A stretch of 64,000 nucleotides of DNA from the sequence record ON529850.1, one strand, 5' to 3'. A program made the translations under genes and the position numbers. The notes beneath the pieces are model-generated. The model searched no databases. It saw only the letters and a program-made list of their open reading frames with translations, and was not told the DNA's origin. Shown here piece by piece: positions 22,863 to 36,881 of the stretch (the first letter of the stretch is position 1; the number at the start of each line of letters is the position of its first letter).

Positions 22863-23044
22863 GACGGCGCCTCAAGGCGTTGCAGGGTCTTGTAGCGACG
22901 ACGCAAGGCCGCCGCGACTTCCGTGTAGAATTCGACATCGCTGGAAGCGATCTCGGCTTCGTGGCGGTAGTAGGCGTCGCGACCTTTGCGCTTCGCCTCT
23001 TCCAGGCGCGCCAGGGTGATCGCGTAGAGGCGGTGAACCTTCAA
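22859..23044 (-). CDS. hypothetical protein
   Basis: GTGA overlaps. Confidence 0.7.
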   Translation of the reverse strand: MKVHRLYAITLARLEEAKRKGRDAYYRHEAEIASSDVEFYTEVAAALRRRYKTLQRLEAPS

Positions 23045-23634
23045 GGGGTGATCTCCGCCAGGACCGCCTTGCGGTAGGCGATGAACGACGCGATGACCAG
23101 CGCCAGGGCTTCGGTCGGAGCGTGACCAACGCCGTCCAGCTGCCCATACACCCTGGCTTCAGCCGGCGTGGCGGACGGTTCGTCATCGAACTCGATCACC
23201 CGCATGTAGAGGCCCGGAACGATTCGGATCGCCAAGGCGATCGCCGCGTCCACCGAAGCGGTGAACTGCGGGATGCTCTGGTCCAACTTGCTGCCCGCCA
23301 TGAAGGGCGGCCACAGGTCCGTCGCCGTCTTCCACGGTTCGGGAAGGTCGAGAATCTCCGCGATCCGCCAATCCAGCGTGCGCACCGGGCCTTTGGCCTT
23401 GTGAAGGTCCTTCAGAAGGACGTCGATCCGTGCGACCGCTTTGGGCGGATTGTCGTGGAGACGCTTGATCTTCTCGGCGCAGTCCTGGCAGCGGAGCGAC
23501 CGCTTCGCCGCGATATGGCCCGACCCGCAATCATGACATTGACTGACGTAGTCGCCGGGCGCCCAACCATAGCCGATCAGCGCGCGCGGATCGTCCACCG
23601 GCCGGGGTTCTTTGCAATCCTTCAGCGCGATCAT
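23041..23634 (-). CDS. hypothetical protein, Zn ribbon plus phage ABA-sandwich-like segment
   Basis: CHDC..CQDC; PQFTASVDAAIAL. Confidence 0.7.
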   Translation of the reverse strand: MIALKDCKEPRPVDDPRALIGYGWAPGDYVSQCHDCGSGHIAAKRSLRCQDCAEKIKRLHDNPPKAVARIDVLLKDLHKAKGPVRTLDWRIAEILDLPEPWKTATDLWPPFMAGSKLDQSIPQFTASVDAAIALAIRIVPGLYMRVIEFDDEPSATPAEARVYGQLDGVGHAPTEALALVIASFIAYRKAVLAEITP

Positions 23635-23930
23635 TTCGGGTCTTCCCAGGCTTCAGCGCCGCACAGACAGACCCCCTCATTACCGGGGCCGCCGTCGCAG
23701 ATGCGGCAGATACGAGTGTCAGGCTTTACGACAGTCGTGTGTTTTTGGCAACCCGGACAGACGTCCTCGCCGTCGATGCGTTTCCAACCCTGACGCTTGG
23801 CTTCGTCACGCGCCGTCTTGATCGAGCCGCCCCGAGGATTGTCGTTGCGGTCCGACCAGCAGACGAAACCGAACACATCCTCCGGAGAGGGCGTCCGGCG
23901 ATCGCACATGACCTCGACGTAGAGGCTCAT
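23631..23930 (-). CDS. Cys-rich hypothetical protein
   Basis: multiple CxxC. Confidence 0.7.
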   Translation of the reverse strand: MSLYVEVMCDRRTPSPEDVFGFVCWSDRNDNPRGGSIKTARDEAKRQGWKRIDGEDVCPGCQKHTTVVKPDTRICRICDGGPGNEGVCLCGAEAWEDPK

Positions 23931-24811
23931 GTCGCCTGCGCCGAGCCCTTGGCGCGCTCGTTGAAGCCGATGCGATTGAACAGGTCGATCAGGCAGGATC
24001 GGCCGGACCCCACGTCGGTCTTCATCAGCAGGGCGCGGATGTCTGCATCCGGAATCGCCTCCACCAGACTATCGTAGGTATAGGCGCTGTCGCCGAGGGC
24101 GGCGGCCGCCTGGGCGATCATGGCGTCGAGCTGCCCGACGATACGAACGCCGTGGTCGTTGACGCCTTCTTCGTAGGGCGTCCCGATCGGAGACCCGTGC
24201 TTCTGCGTCAGGTAGAGCACGCGGCTGCGTACCAGTCCCAGGACCTGGGCGATCAACACACGCTGACCGCTCAACGCCAGCACCAGGTCTTCTACCTTGG
24301 CGACGATGTCGTCGCACCATTCCGGCGAGCCCTTGTTGGCGGCCAGGAGGAGCGGTTCGATCTCGGTGAGCGCGCGATATTCCGGCGACATCTGGACCTG
24401 CGCCACGACCGATTCGAAGTCTTTGAACGGGTCCTCGTCCGCCGCCGACGGCCGGAGGGCCGCCCCCGCCATGTCGCAGGCGCGTTCAGCCGCCTCGCGG
24501 AACTTTTCATCGCGACTGTCGCACCGGGCGATCCACAGCTTGTCCTGACATTCGCGCAGCGCGGCTTCCAGCGCATCGATTCGCGACTTGCTGTCGTCGA
24601 TCACGCTGGCGTCGTGGACATAGAGCAGAGCGGCTTTCCAGCCCTGGCGCGCCGCGTAGGTCTGTCCGTCCATGAACAGGTAATGGTTGGGATGTTCCGT
24701 CAGGTCATAGTTGTTCTTGCCGGCCCATTTTTCGAACTGAACCTCTTCTCCTTGGCAGTTGCTGAGGATGGACGGATTGAAGGCTCTGCGGGTGTCTTTA
24801 CCGAGGGGCAT
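23927..24811 (-). CDS. hypothetical protein
   Basis: SD AAGGAG before MPLGK. Confidence 0.75.
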   Translation of the reverse strand: MPLGKDTRRAFNPSILSNCQGEEVQFEKWAGKNNYDLTEHPNHYLFMDGQTYAARQGWKAALLYVHDASVIDDSKSRIDALEAALRECQDKLWIARCDSRDEKFREAAERACDMAGAALRPSAADEDPFKDFESVVAQVQMSPEYRALTEIEPLLLAANKGSPEWCDDIVAKVEDLVLALSGQRVLIAQVLGLVRSRVLYLTQKHGSPIGTPYEEGVNDHGVRIVGQLDAMIAQAAAALGDSAYTYDSLVEAIPDADIRALLMKTDVGSGRSCLIDLFNRIGFNERAKGSAQAT

Positions 24812-24827
24812 GAATATCTCCTTCGAA

Positions 24828-25271
24828 TCAGATGTGCGGGGCGGTTTTGATTTTCGCCAGCAGCTCACCGGCGATCACATAGATGTTGTGCGAACTGCGC
24901 TGGGCGCCGTCGGCGCCCGTTTGCCGCCCCAGGTCGATCTGGGTCTCCGCCCGCTGGATCAGGTTCTGCGTCCCCAGGCGATGACGCGGGGGCAGGGCGT
25001 TGGCTTTTTCGGTGGCGACGTCCGAGCGGAAGCCGGCGCGGATGAGCGATTGGGCCACACCCAGCCGGGTCAGGAAGCCGCGCTCGTAATCCTGCATGAC
25101 GCGTTGTTCCGCCCAGGTGAGGTTGATCACCTCAGGCGCGCGGACGCATGCCGACATGGCGGTGAAGATGGCGGCGAAATGCGCCCGCCAGGACGGCTCC
25201 CACGCTTCGGCGACTTCCTCCGCCATGGCTTCAGAAGCGGCGTCCAGCATGTCTTCAGTGATGTCGGTCAA
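24828..25271 (-). CDS. hypothetical protein
   Basis: TTG start, SD GGAGG, after boxed promoter. Confidence 0.75.
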   Translation of the reverse strand: MTDITEDMLDAASEAMAEEVAEAWEPSWRAHFAAIFTAMSACVRAPEVINLTWAEQRVMQDYERGFLTRLGVAQSLIRAGFRSDVATEKANALPPRHRLGTQNLIQRAETQIDLGRQTGADGAQRSSHNIYVIAGELLAKIKTAPHI

Positions 25272-25299
25272 GAGCGTCCTCCGTGTTGTTCACGGGTGT

Positions 25300-25325
25300 T
25301 GTAAAGGAACGCTATCCGCTGTCAA
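25300..25325 (-). promoter_or_regulatory. boxed phage promoter
   Basis: TTGACA-N8-CGTTCCTTTACA. Confidence 0.8.
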
Positions 25326-25328
25326 CCC

Positions 25329-25795
25329 AAAATAAAGAGGCCCGAGCAGTTTCCTGATCGGGCCTCAAGGCGCCGGCGTGAACCGACGCTGCGCCTACCG
25401 TGAGGGGGATCACGGCGACGAAACCTGCTCCTGGGAGTTGAACCCGGCTTTCAGGCGACAAGCCCAAGTGACGTTGATTCGTCTCTCAGGGGGCAGACCA
25501 CGGCGAACCGTAGAAGGCGCCCCTGATAGTCGCCATACAGGTAAAATGGGCTTCCCGTATCAGGCGCTCGTAAGCCCCTGATCCGCCGACCGCGTGAAAA
25601 CGCGGCCACCGCCCCTCTCGACACTTTGCGGCGCCAGAGCCTATCCCCTGAGGGGTCCGCATGGATAGCGCGGTAGCCAGGCGACCCGCCGAAGCGCTGT
25701 CGTTACTCCCAGCCTATTCCTCTGATCTTCCCAAGCCCGTGTGCCGGCCAAGAGATCGACGAGGCCGGGAAACCCCGCCCCGTCGATGGCTCCTT
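25329..25795 (-). ncRNA. candidate large structured RNA (~450 nt)
   Basis: no minus-strand ORF in the track; at least 8 hairpins plus long-range GGGCTT/AAGCCC and GTCGCC/GGCGAC pairs; T-loop-like GGGTTCAACTCCC; ends in terminator GAGGCCCGA..TCGGGCCTC-TTTATTTT. Confidence 0.6.
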
Positions 25796-25849
25796 CTCCC
25801 ACACTTCCATCAGGGTGTCAACGGTCGTTGTGATTTTTGTCAAAAATCT

Positions 25850-25945
25850 TCAGGACGAAACCGACAGAAGAATCGGAAGCCCGACGCCGATGAACAGCGC
25901 CAGGAAAATGACGAAGGAAGTGAGAAATCTCGACAGGGTGCGCAT
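25850..25945 (-). CDS. 31-aa hydrophobic peptide
   Basis: MRTLSRFLTSFVIFLALFIGVGLPILLSVSS; TTGACG upstream; weak SD. Confidence 0.5.
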   Translation of the reverse strand: MRTLSRFLTSFVIFLALFIGVGLPILLSVSS

Positions 25946-25989
25946 ACGCCCACGCTTATCATTCGAGGGGACCGCGTCAAGGCGAATCG

Positions 25990-26085
25990 AAAAGGGCTCC
26001 CGCTTGATCAGCCGGGAGCCCTCCGAATGAGCGCGGATGCCAGCCCGCCACGACCGATGGCACGGAAGACACCCGTTTCGGCCGG
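25990..26085 (-). ncRNA. candidate ~95-nt small RNA
   Basis: TTGACG-N17-CATACT (26120..26092); hairpins; terminator GGGCTCCCG..CGGGAGCCC-TTTT. Confidence 0.6.
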
Positions 26086-26126
26086 ATGTTCAGTATGCCC
26101 TGTCGTGTTTGCCGCGTCAAGAACGC

Positions 26127-26285
26127 AAAAGCCCCCGGCGCGTGGGGCGCCGGGGGCCTGCACGCCCACCGAAGGGCGACACGGCCGTCTGTTAGGACCT
26201 ACTCCACGCGGCGGGTGTGCGCGGTTTCAATCCAGGCGCTGCTCTATAGGAGGTTACCAGCAACGGAGGTGAGCAGCACGACCGG
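26127..26285 (-). ncRNA. candidate ~160-nt small RNA with anti-SD loop
   Basis: TTGACA-N17-CATTGT (26320..26292); stem GCTGCTC/GAGCAGC whose loop holds CACCTCC and ACCTCCT; terminator 26157..26127. Confidence 0.65.
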
Positions 26286-26320
26286 ACCTCCACAATGGCA
26301 AACGCCAGGATCGCTGTCAA

Positions 26321-26722
26321 TCACTGTTGGGAAGAAATTTCGTACTTGGCTTCCAAGAACGAGAGCAAGGCCTCGAAATCTTCGAGAGCAATCTTTCGCA
26401 TCTGAGCGTCTTCTTCAACAAGCGCGCTGTCATGACGCTCTTGCAGGGTGGCGGCGTCTTCGAGTTGACCTTCAGGAAAACGCACGAGATTGCGGCCCGC
26501 GAGCGTATGGATGTCTTCCGGGTAGGGGCAGTCCAACGCGGTGGCGTCCAGGATTGCGTTCTGCTCCGTTGTTAGGAAGGCGCCGATAGCACACGGCCCG
26601 GAATAGGAGGCCGGATCACCTTGCCACGCGGCGTGTTGCTGGGCCTGGAGTCGGCCTTCCGTATAGGCGATCCGAGCCGCCTTCAGGATGTCGGGCATGT
26701 TCAGGTGAATGGTCTCAACCAT
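26321..26722 (-). CDS. hypothetical protein
   Basis: start MVETIHL overlaps upstream stop. Confidence 0.7.
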   Translation of the reverse strand: MVETIHLNMPDILKAARIAYTEGRLQAQQHAAWQGDPASYSGPCAIGAFLTTEQNAILDATALDCPYPEDIHTLAGRNLVRFPEGQLEDAATLQERHDSALVEEDAQMRKIALEDFEALLSFLEAKYEISSQQ

Positions 26723-27260
26723 GTGCGGTGTCGCCTTCGTATTGGTCGGAAATGCAGGGGTGATAGGCCACGATGCCGTAGGCTTCTTCGTTCGACAGGC
26801 GCGTGTCATAGAGCTGTCGCGCCAGCCAGGCCCGGTTGGAATCGATGGTATGTTCGCCGTCGCCGGAAAGGGACCGCGCGGCAGGCGGCGCAGGATCGCC
26901 CAAGCGCGCCTGAATCGCCGACGCGACCGCAAAGAGGATGCGTTCCTGTCTTGTCAGACCTTGGCCTTGATCCGGCGCCAACAGCCCCACCAGGGAATCC
27001 ACCAGGGGCGTGAGCCGTTCCGCCAGCTCCGCCTTCGCCGCCAGTTCGGCTTGCAGCGCATTCGCCTGCTGTTCGAGGCGCTTGGCGCGTTCGGCGTCGC
27101 TCTCGCCAACCGGCCCTGTGCGCAGGTTAGCGATCATCGTCTTGGTCGCTTCCGTCAGCCCCGGATAACGGAAGGCGCGCCGCGCCCAGGGTTGATCTCT
27201 CGCGAAGGCGGGATCGTTCGGATGGAGCGGGATTTCCGGGGACGGCATGTCGCTGTTCAT
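26715..27260 (-). CDS. hypothetical protein
   Basis: SD AAGGAG. Confidence 0.75.
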   Translation of the reverse strand: MNSDMPSPEIPLHPNDPAFARDQPWARRAFRYPGLTEATKTMIANLRTGPVGESDAERAKRLEQQANALQAELAAKAELAERLTPLVDSLVGLLAPDQGQGLTRQERILFAVASAIQARLGDPAPPAARSLSGDGEHTIDSNRAWLARQLYDTRLSNEEAYGIVAYHPCISDQYEGDTAHG

Positions 27261-27412
27261 GGGGTCTCCTTAGGGTGTGGCACGGGCCGATGCAGCTGGC
27301 GGGCAGGATCACGCGCCTGCTTGTCCAGGATGTCGCGCATGGTGGGCTTGAAGGGTTCGCATCCACAGATGACGTGGCTTTGGAACCCGCGCGGGCAGGT
27401 AAGGTCACGCAT
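27257..27412 (-). CDS. small Cys-containing protein (51 aa)
   Basis: hand-translated; coupled both ends. Confidence 0.6.
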   Translation of the reverse strand: MRDLTCPRGFQSHVICGCEPFKPTMRDILDKQARDPARQLHRPVPHPKETP

Positions 27413-28286
27413 CGGCGAGCGCCGAGGCGGCGATGGCGCCGGTGTGCGTTGACATGTCGCGCGCGGTGTTCGCGTTGGCGTTTCTCGGCGATGCTTCGGC
27501 GATCCGTTTCAGGGCGTCCTCATAGCGCGCCACCTTACGGGCCAAGGCGCTCGACAGGATCGAACGGATGGGCTGATCCGCTTCCGACACCTGCGGGCAG
27601 GAGCCGTCCATCAGTTCGCCCGCCGCCGCATAGGTGGCGTCCCAGAAGCGGCCGTAGTTGAAGGTGATCGTCTCTGCGTCGACATGCCCGGCCTTGATGA
27701 TCTCGGTCATGATGATGTCCTGCACGCAGCCGCGCAGCAGCCCGTAGTTGATCCCGATGCAGTCTCCTTCGAGCGCCCGGCTGAGCGCCGCCGCCTGGCG
27801 GAAGGCCAGCAACGGCAAGGCTTCACGAAGGGCCTTGACGGAACTGTCCAGGACGACTTGATAGTCATCGTCCTCCTGGGGGCTGTAGAGCTCCATCACC
27901 TTCACGAAGGGCGCCAGGATTTTGATGACGTCACGCCGCATCGGCAGGTTGATGTCGGTGTCGCCGACGGCGATCTTCGCCGCCAGGCGTTCGATCATAC
28001 GGGCCGCCCGCCATTCCGGCTCTTGCTCCAAGGCCCATTGAACGCCACGCCGGCCGAAACTGCGGTTCGTTTCGAACGAGGCCCTGGCCTTGCGATCCAG
28101 CGCTTCGACATGGGATTTGGCGGTGGGATCGACCACCTTCAGGAGGTGGCCGATGACGGCTTCAGCGGCCTTTTCAAAACCGACCAGATAAAGGCCGGCG
28201 ACGGACGGAGAAAGACCGGATGCGTCGGCCTTGATGTGCGCCTTGAGCACGGCGACCAGTTCTTTTTGCAAAGTCACCCGGCTCAT
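27405..28286 (-). CDS. hypothetical protein
   Basis: ATGA overlap start MSRVTL. Confidence 0.75.
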   Translation of the reverse strand: MSRVTLQKELVAVLKAHIKADASGLSPSVAGLYLVGFEKAAEAVIGHLLKVVDPTAKSHVEALDRKARASFETNRSFGRRGVQWALEQEPEWRAARMIERLAAKIAVGDTDINLPMRRDVIKILAPFVKVMELYSPQEDDDYQVVLDSSVKALREALPLLAFRQAAALSRALEGDCIGINYGLLRGCVQDIIMTEIIKAGHVDAETITFNYGRFWDATYAAAGELMDGSCPQVSEADQPIRSILSSALARKVARYEDALKRIAEASPRNANANTARDMSTHTGAIAASALADA

Positions 28287-28513
28287 GATTTGTCCTTTTT
28301 CACCAGGACATAGCCCTGACGTTCGATTTCCGCGAGAATGGTGCGCGCGTCCCAGAGATGCCCGCTGCGCTCTTGGCTGGAGCAGCGTTCCCAGTTGAGT
28401 TCGCGCAGGTGCTCCAAGGTGTAGGGCATGCCGGCCGGCAGGGGATTGCGCGGGCCGACCAGGCACCGCGCGAAACGGTGTTCCCACTGTTTGGGGGTCA
28501 GTTCGGCGTCCAT
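28283..28513 (-). CDS. hypothetical protein
   Basis: SD GGAAGG. Confidence 0.7.
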   Translation of the reverse strand: MDAELTPKQWEHRFARCLVGPRNPLPAGMPYTLEHLRELNWERCSSQERSGHLWDARTILAEIERQGYVLVKKDKS

Positions 28514-32862: not shown

Positions 32863-32937
32863 GCGCCCTGGGTGTGATGGACAGCACAACCGTCTTCTAA
32901 ACGGCAAGACCAGGTTCGATCCCTGGAGGGCGCGCCA
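32863..32937 (+). tRNA. tRNA-Arg(UCU)
   Basis: acceptor GCGCCCT/AGGGCGC, anticodon loop CT-TCT-AA, T-arm CCAGG-TTCGATC-CCTGG, encoded CCA. Confidence 0.95.
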
Positions 32938-35274: not shown

Positions 35275-36252
35275 ATGACCCCTACCGATTTCCCGATCAC
35301 CTTCGCGATCATCGATCCCCGCTCGGCCAAGCGCCTGGAAGCAGCGCTCATTCGCATCGAAGACTTCATGGGGAAGGGCCTGCTGATCAAGGCGGAGTTC
35401 GATGCTATTCGTTCCGACGTCGCGACGGCCACCGAAGGCGCCTGGCGCAAGGTGGTGCAGGAGAAATACACCTACAACGGGCGGTGGGAGGCGCTGACGG
35501 AAGCCGAGCGCAAGCTGGAGCAGTCCTTCTCGATCGCCTATCCGCACGTCCTTCCCGGTTATCTGAAGCGCGCGAAAGCCGCCAAGTCCGCCGCCGGCCC
35601 GATGCGTGATGATATGATCGCCTGGCTGGAAGAGATCGTGCCGCTGTCGCAGCAGCTGATCCAGCTGAAGGGCATGATCGGCAAGCGGGCGCCCAAGGCG
35701 ACCAAGACGTCGATCGCGCGAGACGAACGCGACGCCAAGGCGATGACCTGCCAGTGCTGCGCCCGGCGCATCCTGGCCGAGACCGGCAAGATCGCACACC
35801 ATGGCTATGAGCGACCGGGCGGCGGCTATCAGACCTCGTCGTGCGTCGGCGCCCTGCAACTGCCGTTCGAGGTCAGCCGGGACGCCCTGGGACGGCATAT
35901 TGAACAGGTGACGGCCTCGTTGGCGGATCACCGACGGGTCACCGCCATGATCGAGGCCGAGACCATTCGGTTTACCTGGGCCTATAAGGCCAAGGGCGAA
36001 ACATCCTGGAAGTCTCAAGACCGTTTTGTGAAAATCTCCCGATCGTCGTTCGACGACGCGGTCAAAACCTGGGCGGCCGAGCGCCTGTATCAGGAGCGTC
36101 AACCGACGTTCGATGAACTGAAGGCGCGGAAACTGGCGAACCGCCGGGCGCATGAACACCGCGAACAGGCCTATCTGGACGGACAGCAGCATCGCTTCGA
36201 CCACTGGGCGCAGACCCATGAATGGCGCGAGGGCGCCTGGGAGGTCCTGTGA
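35275..36252 (+). CDS. conserved phage protein with CxxC/HGY/C metal site
   Basis: SD GAGGAG; TCQCC..IAHHGY..G..C.G..PFEVS. Confidence 0.85.
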   Translation: MTPTDFPITFAIIDPRSAKRLEAALIRIEDFMGKGLLIKAEFDAIRSDVATATEGAWRKVVQEKYTYNGRWEALTEAERKLEQSFSIAYPHVLPGYLKRAKAAKSAAGPMRDDMIAWLEEIVPLSQQLIQLKGMIGKRAPKATKTSIARDERDAKAMTCQCCARRILAETGKIAHHGYERPGGGYQTSSCVGALQLPFEVSRDALGRHIEQVTASLADHRRVTAMIEAETIRFTWAYKAKGETSWKSQDRFVKISRSSFDDAVKTWAAERLYQERQPTFDELKARKLANRRAHEHREQAYLDGQQHRFDHWAQTHEWREGAWEVL

Positions 36253-36431
36253 TGGATGAGGATTACGAGATCGCTTTTGACGGCGCGCACGACGCCCTGA
36301 ACAGGATGCGACGCGCCCATGAACGCGGAACGGGATGCCACCTCACCGCCGACATGATTCGTAGCCTGTCCGTCACGCTGATCGGGCAGATGTGGAGCGA
36401 TGATGATCCCCGGCAGGAAACAAGCACCTGA
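36252..36431 (+). CDS. hypothetical protein
   Basis: TGATG overlap. Confidence 0.7.
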   Translation: MDEDYEIAFDGAHDALNRMRRAHERGTGCHLTADMIRSLSVTLIGQMWSDDDPRQETST

Positions 36432-36436
36432 AATAC

Positions 36437-36641
36437 AAAACGCCCCCGGCAGGACCGGGGGCGTCAGGGCGGTGTAGAATAAACGACACGATCTGAACAG
36501 GTTCTGGGCTCCGCTCCCCCGTTAGCCGTTCAACCGGCTCACCGTAATGCCTGACGGTGATCATCGCCGGGTTGCAGTCCTACCCCCGGCTGGCTGAGCT
36601 TCTAGGGAGACCGAAATCTCCGAGTGCTGCGCTCACTTTGC
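36437..36641 (-). ncRNA. candidate ~200-nt structured RNA
   Basis: TTGACT-N16-CATGAT (36675..36648); four consecutive hairpins; terminator 36464..36437. Confidence 0.55.
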
Positions 36642-36683
36642 CTGGAGATCATGCCTGATCGGATGAAAAAGTCAAGCTTTAGG

Positions 36684-36881
36684 CTAGGCCCAAGCTCTCG
36701 TATCGTGACGCCGGCGCGGCATGCCGTGGTCCTCGCGACGGTCTTCGAACACTTCGATCGCCCGCACCAACTTGGCTCGCACCTCATTGCGGCGGTCGTC
36801 CTTGCGGATTTTGGGCAGTTCGTCGAGCGCCAGCCTCAGGGTGTCCTCGATCAGGTCGCCGTAATGGTCGTCGATGATCAT
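36684..36881 (-). CDS. hypothetical protein
   Basis: ATGA overlap. Confidence 0.7.
   Translation of the reverse strand: MIIDDHYGDLIEDTLRLALDELPKIRKDDRRNEVRAKLVRAIEVFEDRREDHGMPRRRHDTRAWA

Follow-up and report, generated by a model that had tools for sequence, protein, structure and literature searches.

The minus strand between about 25790 and 25330 of the DNA analysed here very probably carries the gene of a real, independent and structured non-coding RNA (ncRNA) of a new family. This DNA, a stretch of 64,000 nucleotides (nt) referred to as the window, matches positions 1-64000 of Brevundimonas phage vB_BpoS-Gurke (ON529850.1) without a difference. The phage, a siphovirus in the subfamily Dolichocephalovirinae whose genome has 321.5 kb and a guanine-plus-cytosine (GC) content of 63%, was isolated from sewage on Brevundimonas pondensis LVF1. 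The published description of the phage, obtained with ARAGORN, reports 29 transfer RNAs (tRNAs) and no transfer-messenger RNA (tmRNA), and a non-coding RNA is not mentioned (PMC10070969); a published description of the RNA in question was not found in the literature searched. The original prediction, made from the letters of 25329-25795 without database searches, had called a large structured RNA at this place, and the call has been borne out by the absence of codon periodicity, by a promoter and a terminator of its own in seven phages, by helices with compensatory changes, by a core conserved far above the neighbouring proteins, and by RNA sequencing (RNA-Seq) contigs that stop close to the predicted ends. 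Taken as a whole, the reading put forward here, a stand-alone structured ncRNA gene whose product has a trans-acting, partner-binding role, is given a probability of roughly 0.55.

The collection of homologues, which had been proposed together with the original prediction, was carried out by blastn against 50,697 phage records with the core, the whole RNA of phage Kabachok, and the upstream region as queries; homologues were found only in six other phages, all of them giants of B. pondensis from the same study. Kikimora is 95% identical to Gurke over the whole region, and the five phages of the Kabachok group (Kabachok, Domovoi, Papperlapapp, Bambus, and Marchewka; n = 5) share only ≈145 nt with Gurke, at 85-86% identity. 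In the latter group the element sits in an unannotated gap of ≈560 nt, in a gene neighbourhood unlike that of Gurke, and the homologues of the Kabachok neighbour genes are located at 11, 17, and 46-47 kb of the Gurke window, with 38-49% amino acid (aa) identity. Overall, the proteins of the Kabachok group and of Gurke are 35-49% identical, and megablast detects similarity between the two groups over only 1-2% of a 25-kb query, spread over two or three short segments. Conservation of the RNA core thus greatly exceeds that of the proteins encoded around it, and its persistence in differing neighbourhoods indicates a gene that travels as a unit of its own. The downstream genes of the two groups gave no BLASTP alignment at E ≤ 100, a homologue of the 72-aa gene downstream in the Kabachok group was not detected in Gurke or Kikimora, and the neighbouring proteins had no Pfam match and matched a single PHROG, of unknown function. 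Further copies were sought with sequence patterns and with R1, a covariance model of the core (self-score 164.5 bits) which embodies one choice among the alternative pairings of the second conserved block described below and was used for searching. Six exact or degenerate patterns from the invariant blocks had no match in IMG/VR; two patterns gave 0 and 3 matches in the JGI metagenomes, the three sharing just a 19-mer and scoring at most 10 bits with R1, and two patterns gave 0 and 1 match in the GTDB species genomes, the latter a chance match with 12.3 bits. All four 19-mer matches are without flanking similarity and were judged to be due to chance. R1 found no other copy in the window or in positions 1-50 kb of CcrColossus, other Caulobacter phages being outside the scan. 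From these searches, the family seems to be limited to giant phages of Brevundimonas and to relatives of theirs in sewage. At the megablast level, a sole other stretch resembles the Kabachok group, 36426-36684 within a hypothetical protein gene, with 82-83% identity to four of the five phages; the best match of Marchewka is instead 35614-35820, at 78%.

The predicted architecture comprises a 5' hairpin (P1), a core of 138 nt closed by helix P2 with two conserved blocks around hairpin P3, a set of changeable 3' hairpins, and the terminator. P1 (25755..25787, minus) would be formed by 11 base pairs (bp), a 1x1 mismatch, and 3 bp below a 3-nt loop, and contains the arms ATCGACG (25787-25781) and CGTCGAT (25761-25755) listed in the original prediction. 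Its shape is common to both phage groups despite the different sequence, and one G-C pair is replaced by C-G between Gurke and Kikimora. The core domain (25616..25753, minus) has 85.6% identity to the Kabachok group over 145 nt by blastn. Its proposed closing helix P2 has 7 bp, between 25753-25747 and 25622-25616; UCUUGGC/GUCGAGA in Gurke versus UCUCGAC/GUCGAGA in Kabachok amounts to two one-sided changes with pairing kept, and in a variant from wastewater the change of U25750 to C turns the U.G pair of P2 into C-G. Invariant block 1 (25714..25747, minus), 34 purine-rich nt including GGGAAGAUCAGAGGAAUAG, is identical in all seven phages as well as in the wastewater variant. It is followed by P3 (25675..25714, minus), a hairpin that is interrupted by an internal loop and capped by a UUCG tetraloop, and whose 13 pairs are paired in every sequence, four of them after changes on both sides and two after a change from G-C to G.U. 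Near-invariant block 2 (25624..25673, minus) has 50 nt with two variable positions. Across the core, 160/160 pair cells hold standard pairs, compared to 37-48% after displacement of the partners by 1-3 columns. Between the two phage groups the differences concentrate inside P3, with the flanking blocks identical, which speaks for purifying selection rather than recent transfer as the origin of the invariance.

Block 2 offers mutually exclusive pairings, namely UGCGG/CCGCA, UCAGGG/CUCUGR, CUAUCC/GGAUAG, CCCC/GGGG, and UCAGAG of block 1 with CUCUGR; the third of these corresponds to the hairpin arms CTATCC (25668-25663) and GGATAG (25646-25641) noted earlier. Covariation cannot choose among them because the block is invariant in sequence. 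Some combinations would form a pseudoknot, which makes a pseudoknot in the core possible. The core furthermore has the palindrome CCGG, extended to GCCGGC in Gurke. A long-range pair of block 1 with sequence past the Kabachok terminator, suggested by RNAalifold, was rejected, the partner being the ribosome-binding site (RBS) and start of the next gene.

The signals that bracket the RNA are conserved as well. A promoter-like site on the minus strand (25793..25821) consists of the −35 element TTGACA (25821-25816), a 17-nt spacer ending with TGn (25801-25799), and the hexamer GAGAAG (25798-25793), an arrangement that occurs once in the 64-kb window. The pattern TTGACA-N14-TGnGAGAAG is present in 7/7 phages with differing spacer sequence, and by this pattern the site would act as a sigma-70-type promoter of the extended −10 kind. 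The original prediction had noticed the TTGACA and left the 5' end uncertain because it saw no clear −10; the former is indeed present, and the latter statement gives way to the conserved, extended-minus-10-like TGnGAGAAG at its 17-nt spacing. At the other end, the intrinsic terminator that had been predicted there (25329..25366, minus) was found again, with a 9-bp GC-rich stem and an inner GAAA hairpin (25366-25337) followed by the U-tract UUUAUUUU (25336-25329), and a GC-rich hairpin with a U-tract terminates the element in all seven phages. With a conserved promoter-like site upstream and an intrinsic terminator downstream, the element has the composition of an independent bacterial-type transcription unit. 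In the Kabachok group the U-tract is weak, and GAGG and the ATG of the 72-aa gene follow within a few nt. The predicted transcript (25330..25790, minus) has ≈455-460 nt, its 5' end being derived from promoter geometry and a contig that stops at 25790, and its 3' end from the position of the terminator and a contig that stops at 25340; the boundaries first proposed were accurate to ≈5 nt. As a separate observation, the −35 TTGACA of the Kabachok group is the right arm of the inverted repeat TGTCAAC-N13-GTTGACA (Kabachok locus L003 2925-2960, and the same place in the loci L004-L007 of the other four), which is operator-like, and a TTGACA direct repeat is found instead in Gurke and Kikimora.

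Evidence for expression comes from index searches, which detected the element in metagenomic RNA-Seq libraries from a single study of wastewater. Of the words sampled from a 1.6-kb query, 14% were present in run X1 and 11% in run X2; for the 466-nt RNA alone the shares were 50% and 41%, so that all words present come from the RNA. Contigs were aligned to 23000-28500. Run X1 provided one contig at 25340-25532 without differences (depth 11.5) and another at 25633-25790 with six differences (depth 31.5), X2 one at 25517-25731 without differences, and X3 one at 25612-25748. The real contigs of X1 and X2 all fall within 25340-25790, at word depths of 6-31, and their outer ends, 25790 and 25340, agree with the predicted ends of the transcript; the flanks of 2.3 kb and 2.7 kb gave no real contigs in these two runs, just spurious matches of 20-50 nt. 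The coverage of this one stretch makes carry-over of DNA an unlikely source in X1 and X2. There is moderate evidence that the RNA is abundant or unusually stable, and sewage contains at least one more variant of the sequence.

The stretch folds better than expected by chance, and its base composition is not that of coding DNA. The 467-nt stretch has a minimum free energy of −231.9 kcal/mol, in comparison to −201.6 ± 6.5 for 100 dinucleotide shuffles (z = −4.68), none of which folded as well; for the opposite, plus strand z is −3.2. It is the minus strand that is taken as the RNA strand, on the grounds of the orientation of promoter and terminator and of the G.U pairs contained in the covarying helices, which the other strand would read as C-A mismatches. 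In 25300-25780 GC by codon position is flat, and the genes on both sides have a strong third-position bias. The minus-strand open reading frames (ORFs) inside the stretch are all shorter than 60 aa, as had been stated, the longest having 58, 57, 53, and 51 aa. On the plus strand GenBank records the coding sequence (CDS) GURKE_00600 (25661-26272, 203 aa), which overlaps the 5' part of the RNA and also lies opposite a small peptide ORF and two small-RNA candidates described further below. GURKE_00600 shows no periodicity in its own frame, Pfam and PHROG searches were without a match, and no counterpart is annotated in Kikimora, where the frame is not expected to persist because a 1-nt indel between Gurke and Kikimora falls inside it. 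For these reasons GURKE_00600 is most likely a spurious CDS call.

The 3' domain (25367..25615, minus) is the variable part of the RNA, with stable hairpins and several UNCG loops. It holds the remaining hairpin arms of the original prediction, each of which is present on the minus strand: CCGCG (25605-25601) with CGCGG (25594-25590), ATCAGG (25582-25577) with CCTGAT (25564-25559), TCAGGGG (25526-25520) with CCCCTGA (25492-25486), CCGTGA (25415-25410) with TCACGG (25403-25398), and GGCGC (25395-25391) with GCGCC (25373-25369). Over the RNA as a whole, Gurke and Kikimora differ at 21 positions, eight of which are in predicted pairs, and the pair is kept in 8/8 cases including one change from G-C to C-G. 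Several pairs of the 3' domain covary within the Kabachok group, where Marchewka is without one hairpin and where a 62-nt insertion precedes the terminator in Marchewka and Bambus, the rest being undisturbed. In this group ≈115 nt of the 3' domain are nearly invariant (L003 3250-3365 and the homologous parts of L004-L007) and the flanking hairpins vary; this stretch may be a second functional sub-domain specific to the Kabachok group. Across the two groups, nhmmer aligned the last three 3' hairpins collinearly in a marginal, weak match.

Two tertiary features proposed at the outset fared less well. The strings of the suggested long-range pairs (GGGCTT, AAGCCC, GTCGCC, and GGCGAC) all occur on the minus strand; the pair GGGCUU/AAGCCC, however, is lost in the Kabachok group, where its counterpart reaches no more than 5 bp and is disrupted in both Marchewka and Bambus. 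The T-loop-like motif GGGTTCAACTCCC (25445-25433) is indeed present in Gurke, within a hairpin at 25424..25455 (minus) with a heptaloop at 25442-25436, but the consensus is restricted to Gurke and Kikimora. The loop reads UUCAACU in Gurke and UUCGAUC in Kikimora, and both fit UUCRANN on a G-C closing pair in spite of three substitutions; the hairpin that nhmmer aligned in the Kabachok group carries a larger loop, of 9 nt and with C at position 5, outside UUCRANN. By its distribution, the T-loop would at most be a feature of one lineage and not one that defines the family.

The comparison with Rfam 15 (4227 models), likewise proposed at the outset, was run on the 64-kb window at the gathering threshold and permissively (E ≤ 10) on 25000-26100, 25600-25800, and the Kabachok homologue, and no known class was matched. 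At the gathering threshold the whole window gave only the tRNA-Arg at 32863-32934. The permissive scans returned sub-threshold noise of terminator-like or antisense type, at best 21.6 bits versus a threshold of 38, and no match to GOLLD, ROOL, OLE, raiA, HEARO, tmRNA, ribonuclease P (RNase P), introns, riboswitches, or ribozymes; weak matches to SdsR, SSRC10, and sX13 reflect terminator shape alone. The failure of the original prediction to match the RNA to tmRNA, RNase P, or an intron is in accordance with the negative Rfam result for all three and with ARAGORN, which found no tmRNA. A tmRNA was also rejected by hand. The 5' end forms P1 and not an acceptor half, no 5' partner is available for the 7 nt that follow the T-like arm, the sole candidate for 5'-3' pairing, CGACG/CGUCG, is broken in Kikimora, and the frames after the core that might encode a tag (57 aa in Gurke, 16 aa in Kabachok) are cut by hairpin-sized indels. 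RNase P RNA, with P4 and CR-I to CR-V in mind, was set aside with no model match at E ≤ 10; a group I or group II intron was rejected in view of the RNA's own promoter and terminator, an upstream ORF that ends at a stop codon at 25850, and the lack of a match to intron models in the same scans. A riboswitch, for which the same sensor is expected upstream of related genes, was rejected too, the downstream genes of the two groups being dissimilar. No known RNA family appears to fit, which would make this a new and narrow family, a label that makes no claim of a new mechanism.

As to mechanism, the RNA would be transcribed from its own sigma-70-type promoter, from ≈25790 to 25330, end at the intrinsic terminator, and act in trans as a folded molecule. 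Its invariant and probably pseudoknotted core would present a conserved partner with a specific binding or active site, with the 3' hairpins as a stabilising scaffold. That the core may be a precise tertiary site is suggested by the invariance of two stretches, of 34 and 50 nt, whose sequence is junction-like and rich in purines, next to the covarying P3 and together with the exchangeable periphery. By analogy, the pattern resembles the cores of ribonucleoproteins (RNPs), ribozymes, and aptamers, and would be unlike that of a base-pairing small RNA or a simple attenuator. A function in the regulation of neighbouring genes does not seem apparent. The partner could be a protein, from the host or from the phage, or else an RNA that belongs to the translation or tRNA apparatus; since no protein gene travels with the RNA, the partner is more likely a component of the host, or a phage factor whose gene lies elsewhere. 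The translation or tRNA apparatus is a reasonable guess, no more, prompted by the 29 tRNA genes and the tRNA-His guanylyltransferase of the Gurke genome. Taken by itself, the role as a trans-acting, partner-binding scaffold is put forward tentatively, and several points weigh against the combined picture. The trans-acting mechanism rests on an argument by exclusion, and in the Kabachok group the RBS of the next gene lies directly past the terminator, so that read-through, and with it a leader role, is possible there. Helices P4 and P5 and any pseudoknot sit in invariant sequence, beyond the reach of covariation, and two deep lineages with about five distinct core sequences provide few independent covariation events, which makes statistics of R-scape grade impossible. 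The evidence for expression comes from environmental libraries only; the contigs are unstranded and made by an assembler, metagenomic libraries may contain DNA, and the coverage in a further run, X4, is scattered and resembles the DNA of a relative.

Among the alternatives, a self-assembling or catalytic ornate RNA is in fact a special case of the stand-alone RNA. The core would then serve as a ribozyme active site or as the contact between subunits, and the RNA would assemble into multimers of RNA alone, in the manner of ROOL, GOLLD, and OLE. Long stretches of junction-like sequence without any nucleotide change, which ribozyme and RNP cores show as well, would suit such a role, as would the many hairpins capped by UNCG or GNRA loops, the T-loop-like loop, and the CCGG palindrome of the core. 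The RNA was moreover recovered from wastewater libraries in which phage mRNAs were not, suggestive of abundance or stability, and phage-associated ornate RNAs including ROOL and GOLLD are known from cryo-electron microscopy to form homo-oligomers (PMC12286853). On the other hand, similarity to the ROOL, GOLLD, OLE, raiA, or ribozyme models of Rfam 15 is absent, seven sequences cannot reveal a cleavage or ligation site or intermolecular pairing, and ≈455 nt is at the small end of such RNAs; this explanation is considered unlikely. A new class of giant-phage ornate RNA, whose pseudoknotted 138-nt core would be catalytic or self-assembling in an RNA-only or RNA-protein particle, is doubtful, too; if true, a particle that outlasts or outaccumulates the phage mRNAs would explain why this RNA alone was recovered from the wastewater RNA libraries. 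A long cis-acting leader of the riboswitch or attenuator type, with the core as sensor and the 3' part plus terminator controlling read-through, draws on the succession of conserved 5' domain, variable region, and terminator, which is the layout of a riboswitch, and on the 72-aa gene of the Kabachok group, which has no room for a promoter of its own. It is nevertheless improbable. The genes downstream in the two groups are unrelated by the BLASTP comparison above and the 72-aa gene has no detected counterpart in Gurke or Kikimora; in Gurke, the strong terminator and then a second, separate promoter-like site with TTGACA stand between the RNA and the next gene; the 3' region of ≈250 nt of stable hairpins, partly near-invariant, is far above known expression platforms in size, a conserved antiterminator alternative is absent, and no riboswitch of Rfam was matched.

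The remaining explanations deny the region an RNA of a new kind or an RNA altogether. An element that acts as DNA, for instance as an origin of replication or as a site of packaging or recombination, could account for long invariant non-coding blocks in different neighbourhoods of the two groups, but it would hardly account for compensatory and G.U-tolerant changes specific to one strand, for the bracketing promoter and terminator, or for contigs from RNA libraries that coincide with the predicted transcript, and GC skew has no inflection near 25 kb, which leaves this explanation very unlikely. The chance that the region codes for protein, through GURKE_00600 or a small minus-strand ORF, is slighter still. 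An annotated ORF of 203 aa and minus-strand ORFs of 51-58 aa exist, but no frame has periodicity of GC at third codon positions, GURKE_00600 suffers from the missing Kikimora annotation, the internal indel, and the missing Pfam and PHROG matches noted above, and the small ORFs are lost in the Kabachok group, with indel lengths that are not multiples of three. Equally remote is a divergent housekeeping RNA (tmRNA, RNase P RNA, or a tRNA-like RNA) missed by the tools, a reading that is already largely refuted. The size is similar, the heptaloop keeps UUCRANN through three substitutions, a tmRNA was not found in these phages (PMC10070969) but is reported in a related Caulobacter phage (PMC13459779), and the genome encodes a tRNA-His guanylyltransferase, with 24-29 tRNA genes in each of the Brevundimonas giant phages. 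Against this stand the negative ARAGORN result and the lack of a tmRNA, RNase P, or tRNA model match at E ≤ 10, a 5' hairpin in place of an acceptor stem with CGACG/CGUCG broken in Kikimora, the missing tag frame, and the absence of the T-loop from the Kabachok group.

Several observations concern the surroundings of the RNA gene; those between 25272 and 26325 are on the minus strand. Just upstream, a second unit (26125-26325) has TTGACA-17-CATTGT, ≈170 nt of hairpins, and a GC-rich terminator of 12 bp with UUUUGCGUU. Identity to Kikimora is 91-96%, with a 1-nt indel that marks the unit as non-coding, and pairing survives 4/4 substitutions in predicted pairs; the unit, limited to Gurke and Kikimora, is a candidate small RNA. 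A third unit (25985-26120), with TTGACG-17-CATACT from a promoter scan, ≈100 nt, and a terminator hairpin with UUUUCGAUU, is identical in Kikimora and is likewise a candidate small RNA; the sub-threshold Rfam matches ctRNA_p42d and BjrC68 fall on its terminator. Between these two candidates and the large RNA lies an unannotated ORF of 31 codons (25850-25945) for a very hydrophobic peptide, which by the third-position GC bias in its own frame is probably a real gene of a small membrane peptide. Right after the terminator of the RNA, 25272-25328 contains TTGACA, a −10-like hexamer (TACAAC/ACAACA), GGAGGA, and the TTG start of GURKE_00590. Altogether, five sigma-70-like promoter sites are closely packed in ≈1 kb (25272-26325). 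In a wider frame, the annotation of 13000-37900 includes tRNA-His guanylyltransferase, 8-oxo-dGTP diphosphatase, inorganic triphosphatase (CYTH), and tRNA-Arg(TCT) at 32863-32937. The CYTH gene adjoins the RNA gene divergently in the Kabachok group, and its homologue in Gurke is 8 kb off, at ≈17.4-17.9 kb.

Giant phages are rich in unannotated sequence and few large structured phage RNAs are known, of which GOLLD and ROOL proved to build unexpected RNA-only assemblies. The present RNA adds a clean case with a defined promoter and terminator, a near-invariant core, and signs of high environmental abundance, and it is open to direct tests, since cultures exist of Gurke, Kikimora, the Kabachok group, and the host strain B. 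pondensis LVF1. It also bears on the public annotation, in which GURKE_00600 most likely has to be corrected as spurious, and it suggests that a few non-coding transcription units cluster in the early region.

In this context the RNA is best viewed next to four known systems. With riboswitches and other leaders it has in common a conserved multi-helix 5' domain under one helix, followed by a variable region and an intrinsic terminator; in contrast to these, its downstream genes are unrelated or separately promoted, the ≈250-nt 3' region is structured and partly conserved, and no aptamer is matched. tmRNA, including the two-piece form of alphaproteobacteria, is similar in size class, in a T-loop-like hairpin near the 3' end, and in its setting in a tRNA-rich phage, some relatives of which encode a tmRNA, whereas the present RNA is without an end-to-end acceptor stem, a conserved tag frame, an ARAGORN or Rfam match, or a family-wide T-loop. 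The pRNA of phi29, a phage-encoded, stand-alone RNA of ≈174 nt restricted to phi29-like Bacillus phages, is likewise independently transcribed and structured; resemblance in sequence or structure is lacking, and no link to packaging genes was seen for the RNA described here. Differences exist to ROOL and GOLLD, too, in that neither covariance model is matched, the host is alphaproteobacterial rather than one of the Firmicutes or lake bacteria, the family counts seven isolates, and the RNA, with ≈455 nt, is smaller than ROOL (≈580 nt) and GOLLD (≈800 nt). It is nevertheless with these two that it shares the general character of a phage-borne, stand-alone RNA of several hundred nt, with many helices and a strongly conserved core within a variable periphery.

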